Source: Fonticula alba ATCC 38817 (Eukaryota > Protista > Nucleariida). From it: a stretch of DNA of 10,845 nt. Positions 1 to 10,845 of the stretch are shown one piece after another. The translations under genes were made by a program, and so were the position numbers. Location: the NCBI GenBank assembly GCA_000388065.2, contig KK198107.1. One strand, written 5' to 3'. Each line of letters opens with the position of its first letter. Within the stretch, counting starts at the first letter, position 1. The notes beneath the pieces are model-generated. The model searched no databases. It saw only the letters and a list, made by a program, of their open reading frames with translations, and was not told the origin of the DNA.

Positions 1-95
1 TAGTTGTGATGTTGTTGATATATTGTTGTTTTGTGAGCTTTTTGAAATATTCTCTTCCTCCTATTTTTATTAGTGAGTTTTTATGTGTTTTTGTT
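1..95. repeat. Terminal overlap: identical to 10751-10845 and to 6936-7030 (right end of the 818-bp repeat; internal piece of the rps13 3' region)
   Basis: Base-by-base match of tagttgtgat...gtgtttttgtt at both window ends. Divergence from copy 1 starts at the next base (t96 vs g7031). Confidence 0.97.
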
Positions 96-336
96 TATTG
101 TTTTATTTGTAGCTGTTAATAGTCCTGTTTATTTGTATTATTGGTTTTGAATGTTATTTATTGGTTCTCATTGTAATTAAATGTTGTTTTTTTTATTTTG
201 TTTTATATTGAGTTTATGTACTTATATTTGTTATATAGCTTGGTTGTTGTAAGCTTATAGTTTTGTATGTTTATTCGATATTTAGGTGTGGTAATTATGT
301 GTTTAGTTTTTTTTTTATTTTATTTGTTTATATTTA

Positions 337-398
337 TGTGAGTTATGGGATTCGAACCCATGCAATATGGATGGATATTGCATTTCCATTATACTCAT
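337..398 (-). ncRNA. Aberrant tRNA-like element (pseudo-tRNA or t-element)
   Basis: Minus strand ATGAGTA TAATGGAAAT GCAATAT CCATCC ATATTGC ATGGG TTCGAAT CCCAT AACTCAC A. The T-arm is canonical and the acceptor stem has 5 of 7 pairs. There is a 7-bp central stem with a 6-nt loop and no canonical anticodon loop. Confidence 0.7.
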
Positions 399-400
399 TT

Positions 401-1714
401 TTATTTTGTTTTGTTTTTGTTTTGTTGTAGTTCTAGGCTAGGAATGCGGTATGGTTTTTCTCTAATTAGGTAGTCTTTGACTCCTAAGAGTAATGCGATC
501 CTGTGTCTTCGTTTGAAAATTCGGTATACGTGTAATGCATATTTTCTAGAATAACGTGGGTTGTTATATTTTCTCTTTAGTTTATTTTGTAGTTTATTTT
601 GTAGTATGTATAGGTTACATTTATGTTGTAATTTTATTAATTGTATTGTTGTTTTTTTATTTTGTTTCATTTTGTTTATTTTGTTGTGGATTTCTATGTT
701 TTTTCTTAGATTTATGATAGTTTTTCGTTGTTGTTTATATGTGTATTTATTTGTTCTTTCTAATCTGTTTTGTAATTGGTTTGGTGTATCTTCATGTATT
801 TTTATGATGTTGTATGGCTTGGTGCTATAGTTTAGGTTGTGTTTGATGGTTTGGTTTTGTTTATATATATTATTTTGTATGTTTTCTAATTTTATGATAT
901 GTCTTAAGTTATATTTTATCTTATTGATGTTTTTAATTTTATTATTTGAGGGGCTTGTTATAATATTTTTAAATAAATAGCTATTTGCCCTGCTGGATAA
1001 TAATATGTATTTATTAATTTTTTTTTTTATTGATTGTTTTAATATAGTGTCATCTATATTAAAATAATTTACTGGGGCTTCATCTAATTCATATTCCTCA
1101 TGAACATTTGGAATATGTTTGTTTATCCTCTTTTCTTTTTTTAAAAATGTTTTAGCTGATGCTTCTACATCTGTTCTTATAAAGCCCTTGTTTCTATCTT
1201 TAGAGTCTTGAGACATTTCTAAGCGTATTAATTCTTTTTCTAATTCTTTTATTTTATATAGAATTAATTCTATATCCTTAACAATATTTAATAATTTTTG
1301 ATTTAAACTTAAAATATCATCGTCTATAGAACTATAGCTCTTAGTAAATCTAAATGCCCCTTTTCCATGTCCATCATTTTTAATAATTGTTAATGTATTT
1401 AATAGTTTAGCTAAAGTTCTATATTGTAAGTCCTTCATCTTAAACCTTTTTTCTAGTTTTTTATAAAGGATTTCACCTTTAATCTTATTATCAGCATCAT
1501 ATTGATATGTTTCAAAATTATCTCTATATTGCTTATCCTTATATTTTACATCTCTTGAAAGCAATGAGTCTACAACTAACTCAGGATTTTCTAAGGCTCT
1601 TAATGCTATCATGGAAACTGCTATTAATATAATACAATGTATAAATGAGACATATAATATATAAAAATCAGTATAAAATCCTTTTCCTGTTACCATTTTT
1701 TTTTTTTTAACCAT
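401..1714 (-). CDS. Unassigned ORF, 437 aa (alternative ATG at 1696). It has one N-terminal hydrophobic segment, a probable coiled coil and a K/N/Q-rich basic C-terminal half.
   Basis: Long open frame in AT-rich DNA, on the same strand as all other genes and tightly packed between orf108 and a tRNA-like element. I recognise no family motif. Confidence 0.8.
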   Translation of the reverse strand: MVKKKKMVTGKGFYTDFYILYVSFIHCIILIAVSMIALRALENPELVVDSLLSRDVKYKDKQYRDNFETYQYDADNKIKGEILYKKLEKRFKMKDLQYRTLAKLLNTLTIIKNDGHGKGAFRFTKSYSSIDDDILSLNQKLLNIVKDIELILYKIKELEKELIRLEMSQDSKDRNKGFIRTDVEASAKTFLKKEKRINKHIPNVHEEYELDEAPVNYFNIDDTILKQSIKKKINKYILLSSRANSYLFKNIITSPSNNKIKNINKIKYNLRHIIKLENIQNNIYKQNQTIKHNLNYSTKPYNIIKIHEDTPNQLQNRLERTNKYTYKQQRKTIINLRKNIEIHNKINKMKQNKKTTIQLIKLQHKCNLYILQNKLQNKLKRKYNNPRYSRKYALHVYRIFKRRHRIALLLGVKDYLIREKPYRIPSLELQQNKNKTK

Positions 1715-2016
1715 TTATTTAACAACCTAACTTTTATAAATTCTACTAACGCTTCTTCACTATTATGGGGAACAATACTTGGCTTCTGTTCTACAAACAT
1801 ATAGAGTCCTTTAGAAGTTTCTACTGCTTCAGGAAAATGCATAGCATAAAATGGGTTATGAGAATATCTATAATTAGATATATACTTATTTCCCATTAAA
1901 TCATATAATGCACAAGCCGGCATTATGTTAGGTTCATACAATTTATTTTTGTCTAGAGGAGTATCCCTAAACTGAATTTTACCAGGACCTCTAGTTTTTA
2001 AGACTTTTCTATACAT
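1690..2016 (-). CDS. Unassigned ORF, 108 aa, soluble
   Basis: The ATG overlaps the nad2 stop (ATGTATAG, 8-nt overlap) and the 3' end overlaps the orf437 start. The amino-acid composition is protein-like. I recognise no motif. Confidence 0.65.
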   Translation of the reverse strand: MYRKVLKTRGPGKIQFRDTPLDKNKLYEPNIMPACALYDLMGNKYISNYRYSHNPFYAMHFPEAVETSKGLYMFVEQKPSIVPHNSEEALVEFIKVRLLNKWLKKKKW

Positions 2017-3439
2017 AAATTGTTTCTCCCATTCCTAACATCGTTCCACTAATAATAACTACTAACCAGGGCTTAGTAGAGACTAGCAAGACAACTCCTG
2101 TAGCCACAAACAAAGATAAACTTTGATAATAAGTAATAAACAAAGGTGTTTTAGACTCTGGTTTATCTAAGAAACAAGTTTTTATTAAATATAAATAATA
2201 AAATGCTGAAACACAACTTCCAATAATCAATGGGATCATTACAATAAATGTTTCATTATACATTGTATTATAAATAATTGAAAACTTAGAATAAAACCCA
2301 GCTAATGGAGGAACACCTGCTAATGAAAATAAAATTAATGCTGCTGCTATAGCTAAATAAGGATTAATTTCTATTAATCCTTTTAATGCTCTTAAATTAT
2401 TAGTTCCAAATGAAAAGAATAATATTGCTAATGCTACAGACATTAATGTATAAATAGTAATGAATACCGCTAATGTCTGAGCACTTGTTTCTGACATATT
2501 AGATACTGCAGACAAGGCTAATCCAATATTAGTAATAGAAGAGTATATAAATATAGTTTTAAAATTACTTTGGAATAAAAGACCTAATGAGCCCAATAAT
2601 ACAGATAAACAAACAGAAAGCCAGATTAATGTATAAAGAGATAAATCAGAAGATACTGAAACAAAATTTATAACAGAGAACATAATAAATAATAAAGGCA
2701 TTTTTGGAATTAACCCTTGAAAAATAACCATAAATAATGAAGAATCCCCATAAATTTTAGGAGCCCATAAATGGAATGGAGCTGCTGCTAATTTAAACAA
2801 TAAGCTTATAATAATCAACATTACCCCTAATGATAGTGTACTATCATTACCTAAAAATAAATTTATCTGTGATTGATTTAACCAATTAAAAGACCCAGTA
2901 GATTTGTAAACCATAACAATACCTAATAAATTAATAGCAGTCATAGCTGAACCAACCACATAATAGTTTAATCCTGCTTTAATAGAACTTTTTATATTTT
3001 TATCTAATGCTATTAAAATATAAAAAGATATCCCCATAAGTTCTAAACCAATAAACATTAATCTAAAATCATATGCCATCAATGCAAGAAACATCCCAAT
3101 AATAGATAACAAAAGCACTAATAATGCATCCGCTGTTAAATATTTAGATAAGTAAACTCTACATGAATAAATCAATAAAGCAGAAACAGTTAACACTAAA
3201 AATTTAATATTATTAGTAGCATCACTGAACCTAATCAAATGATCAAACCCAAAGAATACACCCTCAGGCTGAATTAACACTAGGATAACACCTGTAAATA
3301 AAACCACCAATACTAAGTTAACCAAAAATTTACCTGAATAAGATATTAAAGGGCTAATCAACACTAAAATTAAAATAGCGTTTAACAGATATAACTCTGT
3401 AGACAAACCAAAAAAAAAACTATTAAGATTAACTATCAT
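2009..3439 (-). CDS. nad2: NADH dehydrogenase subunit 2
   Basis: Very hydrophobic, 476 aa. Motifs include KAGLNYYVVGS, FKLAAAPFHLWAPKIY, YSSITNIG and FSLAGVPPLAGFYSKF. Confidence 0.96.
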   Translation of the reverse strand: MIVNLNSFFFGLSTELYLLNAILILVLISPLISYSGKFLVNLVLVVLFTGVILVLIQPEGVFFGFDHLIRFSDATNNIKFLVLTVSALLIYSCRVYLSKYLTADALLVLLLSIIGMFLALMAYDFRLMFIGLELMGISFYILIALDKNIKSSIKAGLNYYVVGSAMTAINLLGIVMVYKSTGSFNWLNQSQINLFLGNDSTLSLGVMLIIISLLFKLAAAPFHLWAPKIYGDSSLFMVIFQGLIPKMPLLFIMFSVINFVSVSSDLSLYTLIWLSVCLSVLLGSLGLLFQSNFKTIFIYSSITNIGLALSAVSNMSETSAQTLAVFITIYTLMSVALAILFFSFGTNNLRALKGLIEINPYLAIAAALILFSLAGVPPLAGFYSKFSIIYNTMYNETFIVMIPLIIGSCVSAFYYLYLIKTCFLDKPESKTPLFITYYQSLSLFVATGVVLLVSTKPWLVVIISGTMLGMGETIYV

Positions 3440-4215
3440 TAATTAGTTGTATCCTCTAAATAAGTTAATACTAAAATAACGAAAACTAATGATTGAAGGA
3501 AACAAACTAATAATTCTAAGAAAGAGAAGAATAAAATAAAGAAAAATGGAAATATAGCCAATAATAAATATATACCCCCTAACTCACCTATTTTTACTGT
3601 GAATGAACCTAATATATTTAATAATGTATGACCTGCAAACATATTAGCAAATAACCTCAACCCTAATGATAAAGATCTAGATAAATAAGAAATTACTTCA
3701 ACTAATACAACAAAAGGAGAAATAAAACCTGGAACCCCTTGAGGTAAGAATATAGATAAATACCCTAATCTTTTATTAACAAACCCTAAGAATGTAAAAC
3801 CTAAAAACACAGAAAAAGATAAAAAAATAGGAACTATACCTTGAGATGTAATAGAAAATGAGTGAGGAATTAAACCTATTAAATTTAATATAAATATAAC
3901 CATAAAAATAGTAACAATCAAAGGCACTAATGTAATAGATGAATTTCCTAATTGATTCACAACCATAGCCCTTAACATAGTATAAACTTGCTCTAAGCCA
4001 GATTGAAATCTATTAGGAACTAATAATAACGTATCTATAGATGTAGTAAATATATACGCTATAACAAATAAAGAAATTATATAATAAATCGTAGAAGATG
4101 TAAATGAAAAATCTAACCCTCCTATTAATACACTTAAATAAGAATGAATACTATATTGCGATAAAGGTGACATACAATATAATTCCCCCCCATATACCAT
4201 CATAGTAACAAACAA
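3439..4215 (-). CDS. atp6: ATP synthase F0 subunit a. The ORF-track start is TTG; ATG 4203 or ATG 4173 (MSPLSQY) is more likely.
   Basis: Motifs SPLSQY, PNRFQS, NLIGLIPHSF, and EVISYLSRSLSLGLRLFANMFAGH containing the essential Arg. The stop overlaps the nad2 start (TAATG). Confidence 0.97.
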   Translation of the reverse strand: MFVTMMVYGGELYCMSPLSQYSIHSYLSVLIGGLDFSFTSSTIYYIISLFVIAYIFTTSIDTLLLVPNRFQSGLEQVYTMLRAMVVNQLGNSSITLVPLIVTIFMVIFILNLIGLIPHSFSITSQGIVPIFLSFSVFLGFTFLGFVNKRLGYLSIFLPQGVPGFISPFVVLVEVISYLSRSLSLGLRLFANMFAGHTLLNILGSFTVKIGELGGIYLLLAIFPFFFILFFSFLELLVCFLQSLVFVILVLTYLEDTTN

Positions 4216-4221
4216 ACCATC

Positions 4222-4294
4222 TGGAATTAATGGGATTCGAACCCATGACCTTTTGCTTGCAAAGCAATTGCTCTACCAACTGAGCTATAACCCC
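4222..4294 (-). tRNA. trnA: tRNA-Ala(UGC)
   Basis: Full cloverleaf. Acceptor GGGGTTA/TAATTCC with G3:U70, anticodon loop TT TGC AA, T-arm ATGGG TTCGAAT CCCAT. Confidence 0.97.
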
Positions 4295-4304
4295 TAATAA
4301 AATA

Positions 4305-4376
4305 CACCCTCTATGGGATTCGAACCCATGTATTTACCATGAAAAGGTAATGTCCTGACCTCTAGACGAAGAAGGC
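4305..4376 (-). tRNA. trnE: tRNA-Glu(UUC)
   Basis: Cloverleaf. Anticodon arm TTACC TT TTC AT GGTAA, acceptor GCCTTCT/AGAGGGT. Confidence 0.96.
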
Positions 4377-4379
4377 ATT

Positions 4380-4461
4380 TAGAAAGGATGGGACTCGAAC
4401 CCATAAGACCAAAAGTCGTCAGTTTAGCAAACTGATGCATTAACCATTCTGCCACCTTTCC
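4380..4461 (-). tRNA. trnS: tRNA-Ser(GCU)
   Basis: Cloverleaf with long variable arm. Anticodon arm TCAGT TT GCT AA ACTGA, acceptor GGAAAGG/CCTTTCT. Confidence 0.96.
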
Positions 4462-4502
4462 AAAATATACTTGAATTTAGCCCTACCCAACATATAAATA
4501 TA

Positions 4503-4573
4503 AGGCGGGCATAGGAATCGAACCTATATACGAAGCTTTGCAGGCTCCTATTTTACCATTAAATTAGTCCGCC
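4503..4573 (-). tRNA. trnC: tRNA-Cys(GCA)
   Basis: Cloverleaf. Anticodon arm GGAGC CT GCA AA GCTTC, acceptor GGCGGAC/GCCCGCC with one A-C mismatch. Confidence 0.95.
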
Positions 4574-4584
4574 TTTTAACTTTG

Positions 4585-5377
4585 AAAATAATACTCCAAC
4601 GACAGGTTCCCCTACCATTACCTTGTTACGACTTCACCTCAGTCAATCAGTGACCCTAGAAAAATGCTAAATTAATTCATGACAGTGTCAATACGCCACT
4701 GCCTCCAGATTCTGCTAAATACAATTATTATTATTAAAATATAATAATAATTTATTATATTTGCGTAACCCTCCATTCCACTTCAGGCGAACATCTTTTC
4801 CGAGATGTGACGGGCGGTGTGTACAAAACTGATTCATAGCTTCACCGTGGCATGATGATCCACGATTACTAGCGATTCCATCTTGGTGGACTTATTTTCA
4901 AAGTCCAATCCGAACTTAGGCCAAATTTAGGATTTGCTTACTAGTGTTATGTAGGTAGCATTCTTATTGTTTTAGGCCATTGTAGCACGTGAGTAGCCCA
5001 GTTTATATGGGCCATGAGGACTTGGCGTCATCCTTATAAAAGAGCCAGCTATCAACTGGTCTCCTCTGAGTAACTAATTTCTATTATATTAATAAATAAA
5101 ATAAATTATATACTTATTAATATAATTTATATATAGGCTGTTACCGCACAATATCATTGCTAATTAGAAATTAGTTGGAATAAGCGTTAAATAAAACTAA
5201 ATTATAAAAAACGCTCAGGATTGCGCCCGTTAGCAGAGTTAACTAGAAACATTATTGCATCGGGCTTTCGGCAGCCATGCAACACCTGAATTTATCAAAA
5301 ACTGGTAAGGTTTATCGCGGAGTATCGAATTATACCACATGCTCCACCGCGTATATCAGTCCCCGTCACTTCCTTTA

Positions 5378-5410
<33 letters not shown>

Positions 5411-6192
5411 AACAGTAAGAATTATCTTTCGTAGGAACCTCCAAATTTGGCCTACAGCCTGCTCATCGTTAACAGTAGTGGACTACAGAGGTCTCTAATC
5501 TCTTTCGCTACCCACACCTACGTGCCTCAGCGTCAATAAGCGCCAGTTAAATGCTTTCGCCATTACAGTTCCTTAAGAGATCGATGGGGGTTAAGCCTCC
5601 CTCGAAAATTCCAAAAACCTCTCGCTTATTCATACAAAAAAGGTTGAATTATTAAAAGAGTACAGATTTGATATATGCACCACATAATAATAAAATTCAT
5701 ACCCGCCTACGCACCCTTTATGCCCAGTAATTCCGAAAAACGCTCGCCCCATCCAAATTACCGCGGCTGCTGGCATGGATATTTGCCGGGACTTTCATCC
5801 GTACCATTATCATTATTAAAAATACGGCTCCGGAGTTGTCTAGCTAAGCTCTTCATACTCCACTCGATATCGCTGGATCAAGGTTACCCTCATTGTCCAA
5901 GATTCCCCACTGCTGCCTTCAATTGAAAGGTGGGTCTCTTCTCACCCCCACTGTGGCTGTACGTTCTCACAAACCAGCTAAAGATCCCCGGCTTGGTGAG
6001 CCATTACCCCACCAACTACCTAATCTTATATAAGCCCATCTATAGACAATAAATCATCATATAGGAAAGTTCTCATACATTACTCACCCTTTCGCCATGC
6101 TACAAAGCAAAAAAAATGCAATACAATCAACTAGCATGTGTAAAGCATATCTATTAGCGTTCTTTCTGAGCCAGGATAAAGCTCATTAAAAA
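4585..6192 (-). rRNA. rns: Mitochondrial small-subunit rRNA, about 1.6 kb (ends approximate)
   Basis: Reverse complements of universal SSU motifs are present: ctgagccaggat (5' end), ttaccgcggctgctggca, ccgtca-ttcctttaagttt, gacgggcggtgtgtacaa and taccttgttacgactt. The 3' tail lacks CCUCC. Confidence 0.98.
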
Positions 6193-6233
6193 AACAAAAC
6201 AAAACACAAAAACATACCCACCTAAAACAAAAC

Positions 6234-6306
6234 AGCCGATAACAGGACTCGAACCTGCGACCTATTGATTACAAATCAATTGCTCTACCAACTAAGCTAA
6301 ACCGGC
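6234..6306 (-). tRNA. trnT: tRNA-Thr(UGU), copy 1
   Basis: Cloverleaf. Anticodon arm ATTGA TT TGT AA TCAAT, T-arm GCAGG TTCGAGT CCTGT. Confidence 0.97.
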
Positions 6307-6340
6307 CCAACTATCAACACCTAATAAAACAAAATATAAT

Positions 6341-6750
6341 TAATTATAGGTTATTCAACTAATAACCTAAAATTAATACCTTATCACATAAATACACTAT
6401 ATAATTAAAAAGCCACTACCTGAGATGATTGTTCTATTACTACTCCTCTGGATTCTAAACGACTAGCCCAATCACTCAGGTCATGCAGCTTGTTATATTA
6501 TAATATAACAAACTGCTATTAAATATTAAGACGAGTCCGTCTAAAAAATTACTACAAGCTACCAGTAGCTTAAAACTTATATGAGTAAAAATAATATAAT
6601 AATATTATTTTAACCTGAATTAAAAATAATAAAATAATACTATAGTATTATTGAGATATAGGTACCACTGAGCTAAAAACTATACAGAGCCATATAAAAA
6701 AATCTAAAAATCTAATATATGGCTGATGATACACTTTTGCTGGAAGCTAT
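6341..6750. promoter_or_regulatory. Hairpin-rich non-coding core, copy 1: candidate replication origin or control region, or an unidentified structured RNA
   Basis: Eight inverted repeats, including perfect 22-bp (6490-6511) and 20-bp (6633-6652) palindromes. It lies at the strand-composition switch and contains no ORF. Confidence 0.55.
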
Positions 6751-6752
6751 GT

Positions 6753-6809
6753 AAGGAGCAATTGGAATCGAACCAATGACCACATGCTCTACCACTGAGC
6801 TATACCCCC
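6753..6809 (-). ncRNA. 57-nt tRNA-like element lacking the anticodon arm, copy 1
   Basis: GGGGGTA TA GCTC AGTGGTA GAGC A TGTGGTC ATTGG TTCGATT CCAAT TGCTCCT T. Acceptor, D-arm and T-arm are all paired, with only 8 nt between the D-stem and T-stem. Confidence 0.85.
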
Positions 6810-6834
6810 ATTTTTATGTAATTATGTTGTTATA

Positions 6835-6862
6835 AATCTAATAGAAATTTTTCTATTAGATT
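6835..6862. terminator. 13-bp inverted repeat just downstream of the rps13 stop (possible transcript-end or stability hairpin)
   Basis: aatctaatagaaa tt tttctattagatt. The function is inferred from position only. Confidence 0.4.
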
Positions 6863-6873
6863 GTGATTTCTTA

Positions 6874-7350
6874 TTATTTTTTTTTTTTTGATGGTTTAAT
6901 AATTTTATAGTGTGCATGTGATGTGGATGTAATAGTAGTTGTGATGTTGTTGATATATTGTTGTTTTGTGAGCTTTTTGAAATATTCTCTTCCTCCTATT
7001 TTTATTAGTGAGTTTTTATGTGTTTTTGTTGTTTTTGCATTTGTTTTTGTTCTTTGTCCTTTTACGGGTAGTCCTAGTAGGTGTTTATATCCTCTATATG
7101 TTTTATTGTTGATAAGGTTGAATATATCGGATGTTGTTTCTTTTTTTAATAAGTGTCCTACTCTCATTTTAGCTACTAGTGTTTGTACTCGTCTTTCTTG
7201 TTGGTTATCTAGCTCTGATATTTTTAATTTATGGTGTATGTGGCATAGGTTGCATATTTCTTCTGCTTTTTTTTGTCCTATTCCACTGATTGTTTTTAAT
7301 CCTCTAATAATATTTAATTCTTTATCTATAACTACCCCTTGTAGATACAT
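6874..7350 (-). CDS. rps13: Ribosomal protein S13 with a C-terminal extension
   Basis: Motifs ISGIGQKKAEEIC and YRGYKHLLGLPVKGQRTKTNAKT. The ATG abuts the nad4 stop. Confidence 0.95.
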   Translation of the reverse strand: MYLQGVVIDKELNIIRGLKTISGIGQKKAEEICNLCHIHHKLKISELDNQQERRVQTLVAKMRVGHLLKKETTSDIFNLINNKTYRGYKHLLGLPVKGQRTKTNAKTTKTHKNSLIKIGGREYFKKLTKQQYINNITTTITSTSHAHYKIIKPSKKKK

Positions 7351-8829
7351 TTATAGTTGTGTTTTTATTAATAGAGGTGTCATATGAGATTCTAATAGAA
7401 TTTTAGGGTATACTCCTAATCCAATAAATAAAAAGATTAGAACTATGCTTACTGGTAATGTCATGTCATAGTTTATATCCCTAGTTTGATGAATATGAAT
7501 ACTTAATCTTCCCATGAATACTCTATTATAAAGCCAAATTGAGTATGCGGCTGTAGAAATAATTGATAATCCTGCTATAACTGCAGTTGTTGGTGATTTT
7601 TGAAATGTTCCTATTAATATTAAAAATTCTCCTACAAAGTTAGATGTTCCAGGCATACTTAGATTTCCTAAAACAGCTATAAAGAACACAGTACTTAATA
7701 TCGGCATAAATACTGTCAATCCTCTATAATATTTTAATACTCTAGTGTGGTATTTATCATATAAAGAACCCACTAATATAAATAATGTAGAAGAAATAAA
7801 TGCATGACTAACCATAATCAATAGAGCCCCATCTAATCCTTGAACATTAAACGAGAATATTCCAAGAGTAATAAAATTCATATGACCCACCGATGAATAA
7901 GCAATAATTTTTTTTAAATCAATTTGTCTCAATGTAGTTAGTGAACTATACAAAATACTAATCAAACTAACTAAATAAACAAAAGGAGCAAAGTACCAAG
8001 ATGCATCTGGAAATAATGCTAATGAGTACTTTATTAATCCAAAAGTACCCAATTTTAAAAGCAATGCTGCTAATAATACAGACCCAGATGTAGGCGCCTC
8101 TACATGCGCCTCTGGTAACCATGTATGAAATGGAACCATAGGAATTTTAATTGCAAATGCTAAAAAAAATGCACACCATAATAACCTTTCTTCTAAGAAT
8201 GACCAATCAGTACCTATAAGATCATTCAACACTAAAGTTCCTTTAGTAACATATATATAGGCAATAGCGAAAACCATAAATAAAGAACCAAATAATGTGT
8301 ACAAGAATAATTGAAATGCAGCTAAAACCTTTCTATTCCTAGAACCCCAAATACCAATTATAAAAAAAATAGGAATTAATACTAGTTCAAATAACATATA
8401 AAAAGCTATTATATTATTAGTTAAAAATGCCAATGTTAATATAGATTGAATTAACATTAATAATATAAACATCTCAACATACTTTTTATTAGACATATTA
8501 TAATTTACAAACATACAAATATGAACTGTAAACGCAGTTAAAACTACAAATATTAATGAGAATTTATCTAATAAAAATGTCACAATACCTTCAAATGGAA
8601 ATACAGACACTACAAAATTCAAAGTATAACCATTTAAAATAGAAGAAAAATCCTCATGACCCAATAATAAGCAGTAAAGAGAATATAAAGGTGTTATAGC
8701 AGAAGAAATTATTAAAGCTTCTTTAGTAAAATTATCTTTTTCAAGTTTAGATTTAAATAAAATACTGTGCACAACTATAATTAATGGAAACAATACTAAA
8801 CCAAACAATGGATTTATAGAAAATGTCAT
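7351..8829 (-). CDS. nad4: NADH dehydrogenase subunit 4
   Basis: Motifs FELVLIPIFFIIGIWGS, KIPMVPFHTWLPEAHVEAPTSGSVLLAALLLKLG, DLKKIIAYSSVGHM and NLSMPGTSNFVGE. Confidence 0.98.
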   Translation of the reverse strand: MTFSINPLFGLVLFPLIIVVHSILFKSKLEKDNFTKEALIISSAITPLYSLYCLLLGHEDFSSILNGYTLNFVVSVFPFEGIVTFLLDKFSLIFVVLTAFTVHICMFVNYNMSNKKYVEMFILLMLIQSILTLAFLTNNIIAFYMLFELVLIPIFFIIGIWGSRNRKVLAAFQLFLYTLFGSLFMVFAIAYIYVTKGTLVLNDLIGTDWSFLEERLLWCAFFLAFAIKIPMVPFHTWLPEAHVEAPTSGSVLLAALLLKLGTFGLIKYSLALFPDASWYFAPFVYLVSLISILYSSLTTLRQIDLKKIIAYSSVGHMNFITLGIFSFNVQGLDGALLIMVSHAFISSTLFILVGSLYDKYHTRVLKYYRGLTVFMPILSTVFFIAVLGNLSMPGTSNFVGEFLILIGTFQKSPTTAVIAGLSIISTAAYSIWLYNRVFMGRLSIHIHQTRDINYDMTLPVSIVLIFLFIGLGVYPKILLESHMTPLLIKTQL

Positions 8830-8830
8830 A

Positions 8831-9781
8831 TTAGATGTTTAAACCGTATATAATCCCACTGTTAAATAGTACTATACCTGTACCTACAGGTAAAAATACA
8901 AGCCATCCTAACCTCATCAATTGATCATACCTAAATCTAGGGAATGCAACCCTAACCCAAACGAATGCAATTAAAAAAAAACTAAGCTTTACAACGAATG
9001 AGAATTGGTTAAATAAAATAAAACCCCACCATCCACCTAAATATAAAATTACAGTAATACATGAAATTAATATAATATTAGCATATTCCCCCATATAAAA
9101 CATAGCAAAACCAATACCAGAATACTCAGTACTATAACCCGCCACTAACTCAGCCTCAGCCTCCGGCAAATCAAATGGAGGCCTATTAGTTTCAGCAACT
9201 GCTGAAATATAGAACATAACCAATAAAGGAAAACAACTTAAAATATTCCAATAAATCTCTTGATTCATAATTATCTCAACATAATTTAATGAACCAGCCA
9301 CAATAACAGTAGCTATAATTATCAAACCCAATGAAACCTCATAAGAAATCATCTGAGCCGCAGACCTAATCGCCCCCAACAATGAATACTTAGAATTTGA
9401 AGACCAACCTGCAATAACAATACCATAAACCCCCAAAGCTGACACCAACAAAGTAAATAAAATAGACACATTAATATCACTTACTAAAACATCTTCCCTC
9501 AAAGGAATAAATACCCAACCCAATAAAGAAAAACACAATGTAATTATAGGAGCCACAATAAACATCTTCTTATTAGCCTGAACCGGAATAACAATCTCCT
9601 TAACCAATAACTTCAATGCATCCGCAAAAGGCTGTAAAATACCCATAGGACCCACCAAATTAGGACCCTTCCTTCTCTGAAAAAGAGACATCACCTTCCT
9701 CTCCGCCAACGTTAAATAAGCCACCGCTATCAAAACTGGAACAACCACCAATAAAAAATCAATAAAACTAACCAAAATCAT
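8831..9781 (-). CDS. nad1: NADH dehydrogenase subunit 1. Start set at ATG 9781 (316 aa) rather than GTG 9919.
   Basis: Motifs [54 protein letters not shown] and PRFRYDQLM. The upstream 46 codons are low-complexity G/T sequence. Confidence 0.97.
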
Positions 9782-9952
9782 AAAATAAACAAATAAAATA
9801 AAATAAAAAACAAAACAACCACCACAAAAACTACCCCCCCCCAATAAAATAAAATAACAAAACCCAAACAAAACACAAAAACCCAAACAAAATATAACAG
9901 CTCTAAGGATAAACACCACAAGTGTTTACTACAACACCACCTAAAGAAAACA

Positions 9953-10036
9953 TATGGATAATGGGACTCGAACCCATAAGAAAATAAATTCACTTGTTTC
10001 TAAGACAAGCGTGTCTACCAATTCCACCATACCCAC
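9953..10036 (-). tRNA. trnL: tRNA-Leu(UAG); its first 9 nt lie inside repeat copy 2
   Basis: Cloverleaf with long variable arm. Anticodon arm CTTGT CT TAG AA ACAAG, acceptor GTGGGTA/TATCCAT. Confidence 0.96.
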
Positions 10037-10048
10037 CTAAAACAAAAC

Positions 10049-10121
10049 AGCCGATAACAGGACTCGAACCTGCGACCTATTGATTACAAATCAATTGCTC
10101 TACCAACTAAGCTAAACCGGC
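10049..10121 (-). tRNA. trnT: tRNA-Thr(UGU), copy 2
   Basis: Identical to 6234-6306. Confidence 0.96.
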
Positions 10122-10155
10122 CCAACTATCAACACCTAATAAAACAAAATATAAT

Positions 10156-10565
10156 TAATTATAGGTTATTCAACTAATAACCTAAAATTAATACCTTATC
10201 ACATAAATACACTATATAATTAAAAAGCCACTACCTGAGATGATTGTTCTATTACTACTCCTCTGGATTCTAAACGACTAGCCCAATCACTCAGGTCATG
10301 CAGCTTGTTATATTATAATATAACAAACTGCTATTAAATATTAAGACGAGTCCGTCTAAAAAATTACTACAAGCTACCAGTAGCTTAAAACTTATATGAG
10401 TAAAAATAATATAATAATATTATTTTAACCTGAATTAAAAATAATAAAATAATACTATAGTATTATTGAGATATAGGTACCACTGAGCTAAAAACTATAC
10501 AGAGCCATATAAAAAAATCTAAAAATCTAATATATGGCTGATGATACACTTTTGCTGGAAGCTAT
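10156..10565. promoter_or_regulatory. Hairpin-rich non-coding core, copy 2 (candidate origin or control region)
   Basis: Identical to 6341-6750, and again at a strand-composition switch. Confidence 0.55.
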
Positions 10566-10567
10566 GT

Positions 10568-10624
10568 AAGGAGCAATTGGAATCGAACCAATGACCACAT
10601 GCTCTACCACTGAGCTATACCCCC
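10568..10624 (-). ncRNA. 57-nt tRNA-like element lacking the anticodon arm, copy 2
   Basis: Identical to 6753-6809. Confidence 0.85.
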
Positions 10625-10688
10625 ATTTTTATGTAATTATGTTGTTATAAATCTAATAGAAATTTTTCTATTAGATTGTGATTTCTTA

Positions 10689-10845
10689 TTATTTTTTTTT
10701 TTTTGATGGTTTAATAATTTTATAGTGTGCATGTGATGTGGATGTAATAGTAGTTGTGATGTTGTTGATATATTGTTGTTTTGTGAGCTTTTTGAAATAT
10801 TCTCTTCCTCCTATTTTTATTAGTGAGTTTTTATGTGTTTTTGTT
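10689..10845 (-). pseudogene. rps13: 5'-truncated rps13 fragment (last 51 codons plus stop)
   Basis: Identical to 6874-7030. With circular closure the codon immediately upstream (97-95) is an in-frame TAA, so it has no start and forms no fusion. Confidence 0.8.

Follow-up and report, generated by a model that had tools for sequence, protein, structure and literature searches.

How does a mitochondrial DNA module come to carry two identical copies of one sequence, and what do these copies do? The question is raised by scaffold KK198107.1 (assembly GCA_000388065.2 of Fonticula alba ATCC 38817), which was analyzed here over a window of 10,845 nt (the whole stretch under study) and carries two copies of an 818-bp repeat, hereafter R. 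The window was identified through an exact protein look-up, and a published table attributes the assembly to this strain. F. alba is a nucleariid-related amoeba from the sister group of the fungi, and a full-text literature search retrieved no paper on the structure of its mitochondrial genome. A preliminary description of the window, made from the sequence alone, had proposed a system of multi-gene minicircles in a standard-code protist or alga, with R as the shared constant cassette of the circles. The code is indeed standard (no in-frame TGA versus 19 TGG codons), and the organism is a protist, although an opisthokont amoeba and not an alga. For R itself we favour, with moderate confidence, a different reading, in which it is a segmental duplication in two copies that serves, as in plants, as a substrate for recombination, within a module that is self-closed in the laboratory strain.

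An 818-bp direct repeat divides the module into two arms

Once circularized, the unit is 10,750 bp long; positions 1-95 are a copy of 10751-10845 and represent closure by the assembler, with no additional DNA. Copy 1 of R lies at 6213-7030, between rns, which ends arm B, and rps13, which starts arm A. Copy 2 lies at 10028-10845, between trnL, which ends arm A, and, over the circular join, the start of arm B at position 96. The two copies are direct and 100% identical over the 818 bp, and the identity ends sharply on either side. Arm A (7031-10027) contains the head of rps13, nad4, nad1 and trnL, and arm B (96-6212) contains orf437, orf108, nad2, atp6, trnA/E/S/C and rns; all genes of the window are on the minus strand, on which the arms and the elements of R are also read. 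The copies are spaced by 3,815 bp. The circles of 3,815 and 6,935 bp that had been predicted from this arrangement are arithmetically correct, and a two-circle traversal of the assembly is possible.

The arrangement was compared with Logan k=31 contigs of four runs: the source sample of the laboratory strain (X2), a soil sample (X5), a sediment sample (X6) and a sample of another organism (X7). In X2, this independent assembly yielded contigs covering 66-4282, 4261-6242, 6213-6391, 6362-7030, 7001-7058 and 7030-10057, which is exactly the contig set of a figure-of-eight graph. The contigs of all four runs break at both boundaries of R. The X2 contigs break exactly there, which places the repeat and all four of its junctions in the reads. 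The identical direct repeats, the 10,750-bp unit and its gene content are confirmed. Closure is another matter. The 95-nt overlap would correspond to K-1 of a graph assembler with K=96, and such an assembler (this genome was presumably assembled with ALLPATHS-LG) would by construction give both this overlap and copies that are perfectly identical, so that closure alone is weak evidence for a physical circle. Genes for cox1-3, cob, rnl, nad3/4L/5/6 and atp9 are absent from the 10,750-bp module, and hence other mitochondrial DNA must exist.

R duplicates part of the rps13-to-trnL interval

Both ends of R cut genes, with 157 nt of the rps13 3' end at one boundary and 9 nt of trnL at the other. 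The rps13 frame (6874-7350) has 158 codons, of which codons 108-158 and the stop (6874-7029) lie within R, and its Pfam S13 domain stops at residue 107, i.e., at base 7030. In copy 2 the duplicate of this tail (10689-10845) is untranslated, and in this copy, which faces arm B, a stop codon immediately upstream closes the frame of the tail. The 9-nt stub of the trnL 5' end (6213-6221) stands beside rns, and the identical 9 nt at 10028-10036 form the 5' end of the real trnL. The rps13 tail is kept in two related lineages (L013 and L093), with 57% and 68% identity, no gaps and many invariant residues, and the genes of these relatives have 158 and 159 codons. To judge from this alignment, the 158-aa protein is the conserved form and the deposited 116-aa model is truncated. 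Since the tail is genuine coding sequence and the copy on the side of arm B is closed by a stop codon, R is a duplicate of part of the stretch between rps13 and trnL and not a purpose-built control region. A role as a dedicated control region is not supported, given the conserved stretch of rps13 and the trnL stub.

In coding-strand order, R consists of the rps13 tail, a short hairpin, a tRNA-like element, a 445-nt core, trnT(tgt) and the 9 nt of trnL. The tRNA-like element (57 nt, at 6753-6809 and 10568-10624) lacks the anticodon arm, having 2 nt in place of 17 positions of the tRNA model, and scores 45.3 bits with the Rfam tRNA model; trnT(tgt), at 6233-6307 and 10048-10122, scores 67.5 bits. 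The proposal that R bundles trnT with an anticodon-less tRNA mimic thus stands. The element is probably an RNA-processing signal. Its 45-nt core, which includes the deletion junction (6760-6804 and 10575-10619), recurs with one mismatch on a 2160-nt X2 contig of depth 448, and short X7 contigs likewise carry it, so that the element is dispersed in this mitochondrial DNA and is not confined to R.

The putative origin that had been placed in the same bundle fared less well. The non-coding core of R (6308-6752) is rich in hairpins (palindromes I1, I4, I8 and I9) and has a minimum free energy of -115 kcal/mol versus -85 kcal/mol for shuffled sequences (z = -5.6). Other than these hairpins, no support for a replication origin was found in R. 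Strand-composition switches were given no weight in this respect, as they follow the coding content: the A-rich stretches are the Lys/Asn-rich orf437 and non-coding DNA, and the T-rich ones are genes for membrane proteins. A known RNA in the core was also considered and rejected, no Rfam family being matched at E values up to 10.

The gene order of one relative bears on the age of R. The L013 lineage is represented by metagenome contig SMFF01001046.1, whose nad1 is 84% identical to that of F. alba. In L013 an unrelated sequence follows rps13, and the genes upstream of nad1 are trnC, trnL(taa), trnM and tatC and not trnT-trnL(tag) as in F. alba. With an order that differs at both rps13 and nad1, the core of R is not an old, fixed control region here. 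The tatC gene of this contig (L013 27-578) lies in mitochondrial DNA, beside trnM, trnL(taa), trnC and nad1; a homology search with the partial TatC of this relative gave no match for an F. alba orthologue.

The depth of R equals about the sum of the two arms

Depth was taken as the mean k-mer depth per contig, and the metagenome rns contigs were left out of the comparison because conserved 16S words inflate the mean. In X2 the depth was 384 for the left part of arm B, 298 for its right part, 505-587 for R and 309 for arm A. The corresponding values for the left part of arm B, R and arm A were 69, 114 and 74.5 in X5, 20, 34 and 24 in X6, and 16, 46 and 38 in X7. The ratio of R to the sum of arm A and the left part of arm B was therefore 0.73-0.85 in X2, 0.79 in X5, 0.77 in X6 and 0.85 in X7. 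As the depth of R is about that of the two arms together, with no excess, R is confined to arms A and B. In lice, where 9-20 circles all carry the control region, this region is covered 4-12x above coding depth (PMC7098387). A minicircle system with R as the shared cassette is not supported, the ratio being 0.73-0.85 in all four datasets, against 4-12x in lice. The depth of R, proposed as a check for further circles, was never above A+B, and no further R-bearing chromosomes are indicated.

The second check concerned the depth of the arms, unequal values of which would point to independent circles. The ratio of arm A to the left part of arm B was 0.81, 1.08, 1.17 and 2.4 across the four samples, so that, within noise, the arms do not differ in X2, X5 or X6, and X7 alone shows an inequality. 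This outlier is environmental and may mix strains. An arm A at 2.4x arm B, with R tracking the sum, fits an A+R unit that varies independently, and a strain mixture would also explain it.

As to the remaining mitochondrial genome, two further X2 contigs that are probably mitochondrial have depths of 196 and 448, versus 300-384 for the module, and share with the window only short matches of the tRNA type; these values fit a remainder that is nearly equimolar with the module. Exact-pattern scans with 30 nt of the R core gave no match in JGI metagenomes, IMG/VR or GTDB genomes, and cluster look-ups of nad4, nad2, orf437 and orf108 retrieved no longer contigs from other assemblies. Separately, 2012 runs of three other organisms (X29, X30 and X32) contain 76-90% of the sampled R words, with arm A under the 5% listing threshold. 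Possible sources are library carry-over amplified by the twofold copy number of R or, if these are RNA libraries, abundant R RNA.

Junctions differ between the laboratory strain and environmental populations

Arm B does not leave R in the same way in all strains. Environmental contigs of 5870 nt (X5 and X6) and 4935 nt (X7) lead from trnA over the whole of arm B into the last 26 nt of R, and from there into unrelated DNA that is rich in AT and at least 1,658 nt long, region D, in which no open reading frame (ORF) of at least 60 aa, no tRNA and no Rfam match was found. These 26 nt (7005-7030, equal to 70-95; loci L011 and L012) are the sole part of R that adjoins arm B in the environmental strains, and they link arm B to D. 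In X2, the arm B contig (66-4282) extends into R for exactly 30 nt (k-1), which makes the R-to-B junction real in the laboratory strain; by the same token, its start exactly 30 nt inside R indicates that the D-B junction is absent or rare there.

At the other side, an extended repeat of 847 bp, R' (6213-7059), is unbroken in X5 and adds 29 nt of arm A (7031-7059) to R. In this sample R' leads either into arm A or into a third context, C. A loose end beginning GGAAAATTTTTG follows position 7059 in X2, X5 and X7, and the arm A contigs begin at 7030; an exact-pattern scan of IMG/VR and GTDB with 30 nt of the C context gave no match. The wild arrangement is either D-26mer-B-R'-A-R'-C or an isomer from which A+R' has been released as a loop, and the short contigs fit both. 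Given that arm B is joined to D in both isomers, the wild module is open and part of a longer molecule. The closed module that had been described hence holds for the laboratory strain, in which the component of A, B and R closes on itself, and does not hold for three environmental populations, in which it is joined to other DNA.

Across the four populations R shows one changed base, and the arms show 1-3 differences. Position 7028 is a G/C polymorphism within the 26 nt: the G of the laboratory strain encodes Thr108 of rps13, and the C of the three environmental populations encodes Arg108, which is also the residue at this position in both relatives. The G7028 allele equals the 26-mer that adjoins arm B in the wild strains. 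It is the trace that a crossover or gene conversion at the 26-mer would leave. Two further contigs occur in X2, one bearing C7028 (depth 336) and one that passes 7059 into C. As the depth of the R body, 505-587, is already taken by arms A and B, these two contigs are not fed from the R body.

Proposed recombination at R and at the 26-nt repeat

The reading that we favour proposes the following course. The interval copied would have begun with the rps13 3' end and, past the tRNA-like element and trnT, have taken in the first 9 nt of trnL, so that identical direct copies came to bracket a 3.0-kb nad1-nad4-rps13 block. Gene conversion would keep the copies identical, and homologous recombination between them may interconvert the two-arm form with a 3,815-bp circle (A+R) and a remainder. 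The released A+R circle would be self-sufficient, and the tRNA-like element would work as an RNA-processing signal. A second exchange, between the 26-mer beside arm B and the same 26 nt in the R' beside C, could interconvert the wild and laboratory states; it is predicted to yield exactly the 10,750-bp circle and a D-C remainder. The 26-nt repeat (7005-7030) marks a rearrangement by which the strains differ. In the laboratory strain the module would be a molecule of its own, apart from the remaining mitochondrial DNA.

Several results weigh against this reading. No contig or read crosses R, and no A-R-A or B-R-B isomer was seen; furthermore, the one-circle and two-circle forms have the same four junctions, between which short contigs cannot choose. 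For the laboratory strain the reciprocal D-55 nt-C junction is a prediction from exchange at the 26-mer, and the C7028 contig of X2 has an end 8 nt from 7028 (start 7021 or end 7035) that would not be expected under the simple model. The contig-mean k-mer depths are noisy, with a 29% difference between the left and right parts of arm B in X2, and the unequal A:B ratio comes from one environmental sample only, possibly a mixture of strains. The lack of R on other mitochondrial scaffolds rests on depth alone.

The separate steps can be joined into a more comprehensive reading, which we advance only tentatively. The genome would be multipartite, and an essential module (rns, atp6, nad1/2/4, rps13 and seven tRNA genes) would reside in the main chromosome in the wild. 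In the culture strain this module would have been excised via the 26-nt repeat as an autonomous 10.75-kb circle, which would split via R into 3.8-kb and 6.9-kb circles, with R giving each of them a start for replication and transcription.

The most probable of the rival explanations, which we nonetheless consider unlikely, holds that two autonomous circles dominate in vivo, one of 3,815 bp (trnL-nad1-nad4-rps13-tRNA-like element-trnT) and one of 6,935 bp (from rns to orf437), each with one R as origin and promoter, and that the 10.75-kb unit is a path of the assembler. Both native junctions of R, at the rps13 tail and at the trnL 5' end, face arm A, so that an A+R circle is gene-complete on its own. 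The richness of R in hairpins and the X7 depths, in which A is 2.4x the left part of arm B and R is about A+B, point in the same direction. There is also a precedent in Globodera ellingtonae, in which two circles with a four-fold difference in copy number share a non-coding region of about 6.5 kb, as confirmed by PCR and Southern blot (PMC5011991). The equality of the arms within noise in X2, X5 and X6 speaks against such circles. Moreover, the wild arm B starts beside D and not beside R, and a closed 6,935-bp B circle is impossible there. The choice of B-R-A-R by an assembler that had mate-pair libraries would add a weak argument to the same effect.

One stable chromosome of 10.75 kb, on which both copies of R are fixed, stem from a recent duplication and do not recombine appreciably, appears to us less likely still. 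Perfect direct repeats of 818 bp in mitochondrial DNA are generally recombinogenic, all arrangements at large repeats have been found in plants (PMC3381676), and the strains compared here were rearranged at even shorter repeats. R is also unchanged but for one base over four populations, versus 1-3 differences in the arms. Such a chromosome would agree with the assembly path and with the depths of the laboratory strain, in which R lies at about 1.3-2x either arm and the values of A and B are similar.

It also seems improbable to us that the closure is an artefact, i.e., that the module of the laboratory strain also lies in one large mitochondrial chromosome and that the circle is a loop of the graph. 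The joining of the environmental module to D and C speaks for this view, as does the presence of the contig leading into C in X2. Nevertheless, the arm B contig of X2 reaches exactly 30 nt into R and does not branch at the 26-mer, and the depth of the R body (505-587) is too low to serve all three of A (296-309), B (384) and C (336).

Finally, a louse-like or diplonemid-like set of many minicircles with R as the universal constant region would account for a window without most mitochondrial genes and for the larger number of public runs that hold R than arm A, but it is very improbable and largely refuted by depth, R being below A+B in four of four datasets against the excess in lice (PMC7098387), and it also meets genes that are intact and not modular, a repeat that contains coding sequence, and other probably mitochondrial X2 contigs that share just short tRNA-like matches with R.

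Comparison with known multipartite genomes

The two-copy duplication acting as a recombination substrate finds its closest behavioural match, by analogy, in the repeat-mediated multipartite organization of plant mitochondria. In Mimulus guttatus, large repeats of the mitochondrial genome give rise to alternative arrangements, unequal stoichiometries and chimeric ORFs (PMC3381676). As in plants, long identical direct repeats that contain gene pieces occur in one mapped circle, one crossover predicts two smaller circles, lines are rearranged at short repeats of tens of nt (here 26 nt), and the stoichiometry may vary between samples. The differences lie in the scale, since here a gene-dense 10.75-kb module with an 818-bp repeat carries a partial gene set in an opisthokont amoeba, and in the alternative arrangements across R, which were not observed here.

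The circles predicted for F. alba would resemble those of G. ellingtonae in that multi-gene circles share a region, with rRNA and tRNA genes on one and nad genes on the other, and in that their copy number might differ. In F. alba, by contrast, the shared part measures 818 bp, and a coding tail, a tRNA gene and a tRNA stub belong to it; the circles of G. ellingtonae hold the whole genome, whereas those predicted for F. alba would carry only the smaller part of the gene set. Lice have in common with the circles predicted for F. alba the small size, the few genes and a shared block with tRNA-like or structured sequence, but the F. alba repeat is two-copy, shows no depth excess and is partly coding (rps13 tail, trnT and trnL stub). 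Diplonema papillatum likewise has circular chromosomes composed of a constant region and a cassette (PMC3035467); its cassettes are gene fragments joined by trans-splicing, whereas the F. alba genes are complete.

The architecture seen in the data is driven by repeats and varies between strains, as is known above all from plants. Should spanning reads bear this out, an opisthokont protist would be added to the organisms with recombination-derived mitochondrial sub-circles, and the 10.75-kb module with its 818-bp and 26-nt repeats would provide a small, tractable example. In practical terms, KK198107.1 should be annotated neither as a complete mitochondrial genome nor as a minicircle.

Other features of the module

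In arm A, rps13 is followed by nad4 (7351-8829), nad1 (8831-9919) and trnL(tag) (9953-10036), the first 9 nt of which come from R copy 2. Arm B carries orf437 (401-1714), orf108 (1690-2016), nad2 (2009-3439), atp6 (3439-4215), trnA/E/S/C (4222-4574) and rns (4584-6192). The Pfam matches of nad1, nad2, nad4, atp6 and rps13 are full-length, as is rns, so that these genes are intact. The deposited models are shorter than the ORFs, with 116 versus 158 aa for rps13, 316 versus 362 for nad1 and 438 versus 476 for nad2.

The two arm B frames orf437 and orf108 overlap by 25 nt (401-2016 on the minus strand), and their proteins are 100% conserved in a soil-metagenome strain. Neither gave anything above the Pfam threshold or a homology match, and the ESM Atlas matches were at chance level only. 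An attempt to annotate them as a replicase or a ribosomal protein was rejected for lack of support from Pfam and the ESM Atlas; they could be genes for very divergent ribosomal proteins.

Short tRNA-type repeats occur at several places. An identical 21-nt T-arm segment is found in trnS(gct) (4388-4408) and trnL(tag) (9961-9981), and trnA and trnT are 82% identical across 60 nt; such short tRNA repeats are the cause of k=31 contig breaks. Just 3' of orf437, a T-arm-like 21-mer (345-365) is 81% identical to the 21-mer of trnS and trnL and is also close to the T-arms of trnA and trnE. Neither ARAGORN nor Rfam detected a full tRNA at this position, and the 21-mer probably represents the remnant of a tRNA or a signal for processing.

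An A-rich stretch of near-tandem 40-mers (9792-9882) lies where the nad1 ORF starts, directly upstream of the deposited 316-aa model. The contigs of six runs from one 2025 study all stop within this stretch, at differing positions between 9799 and 9841, which suggests that the stretch is variable in length.

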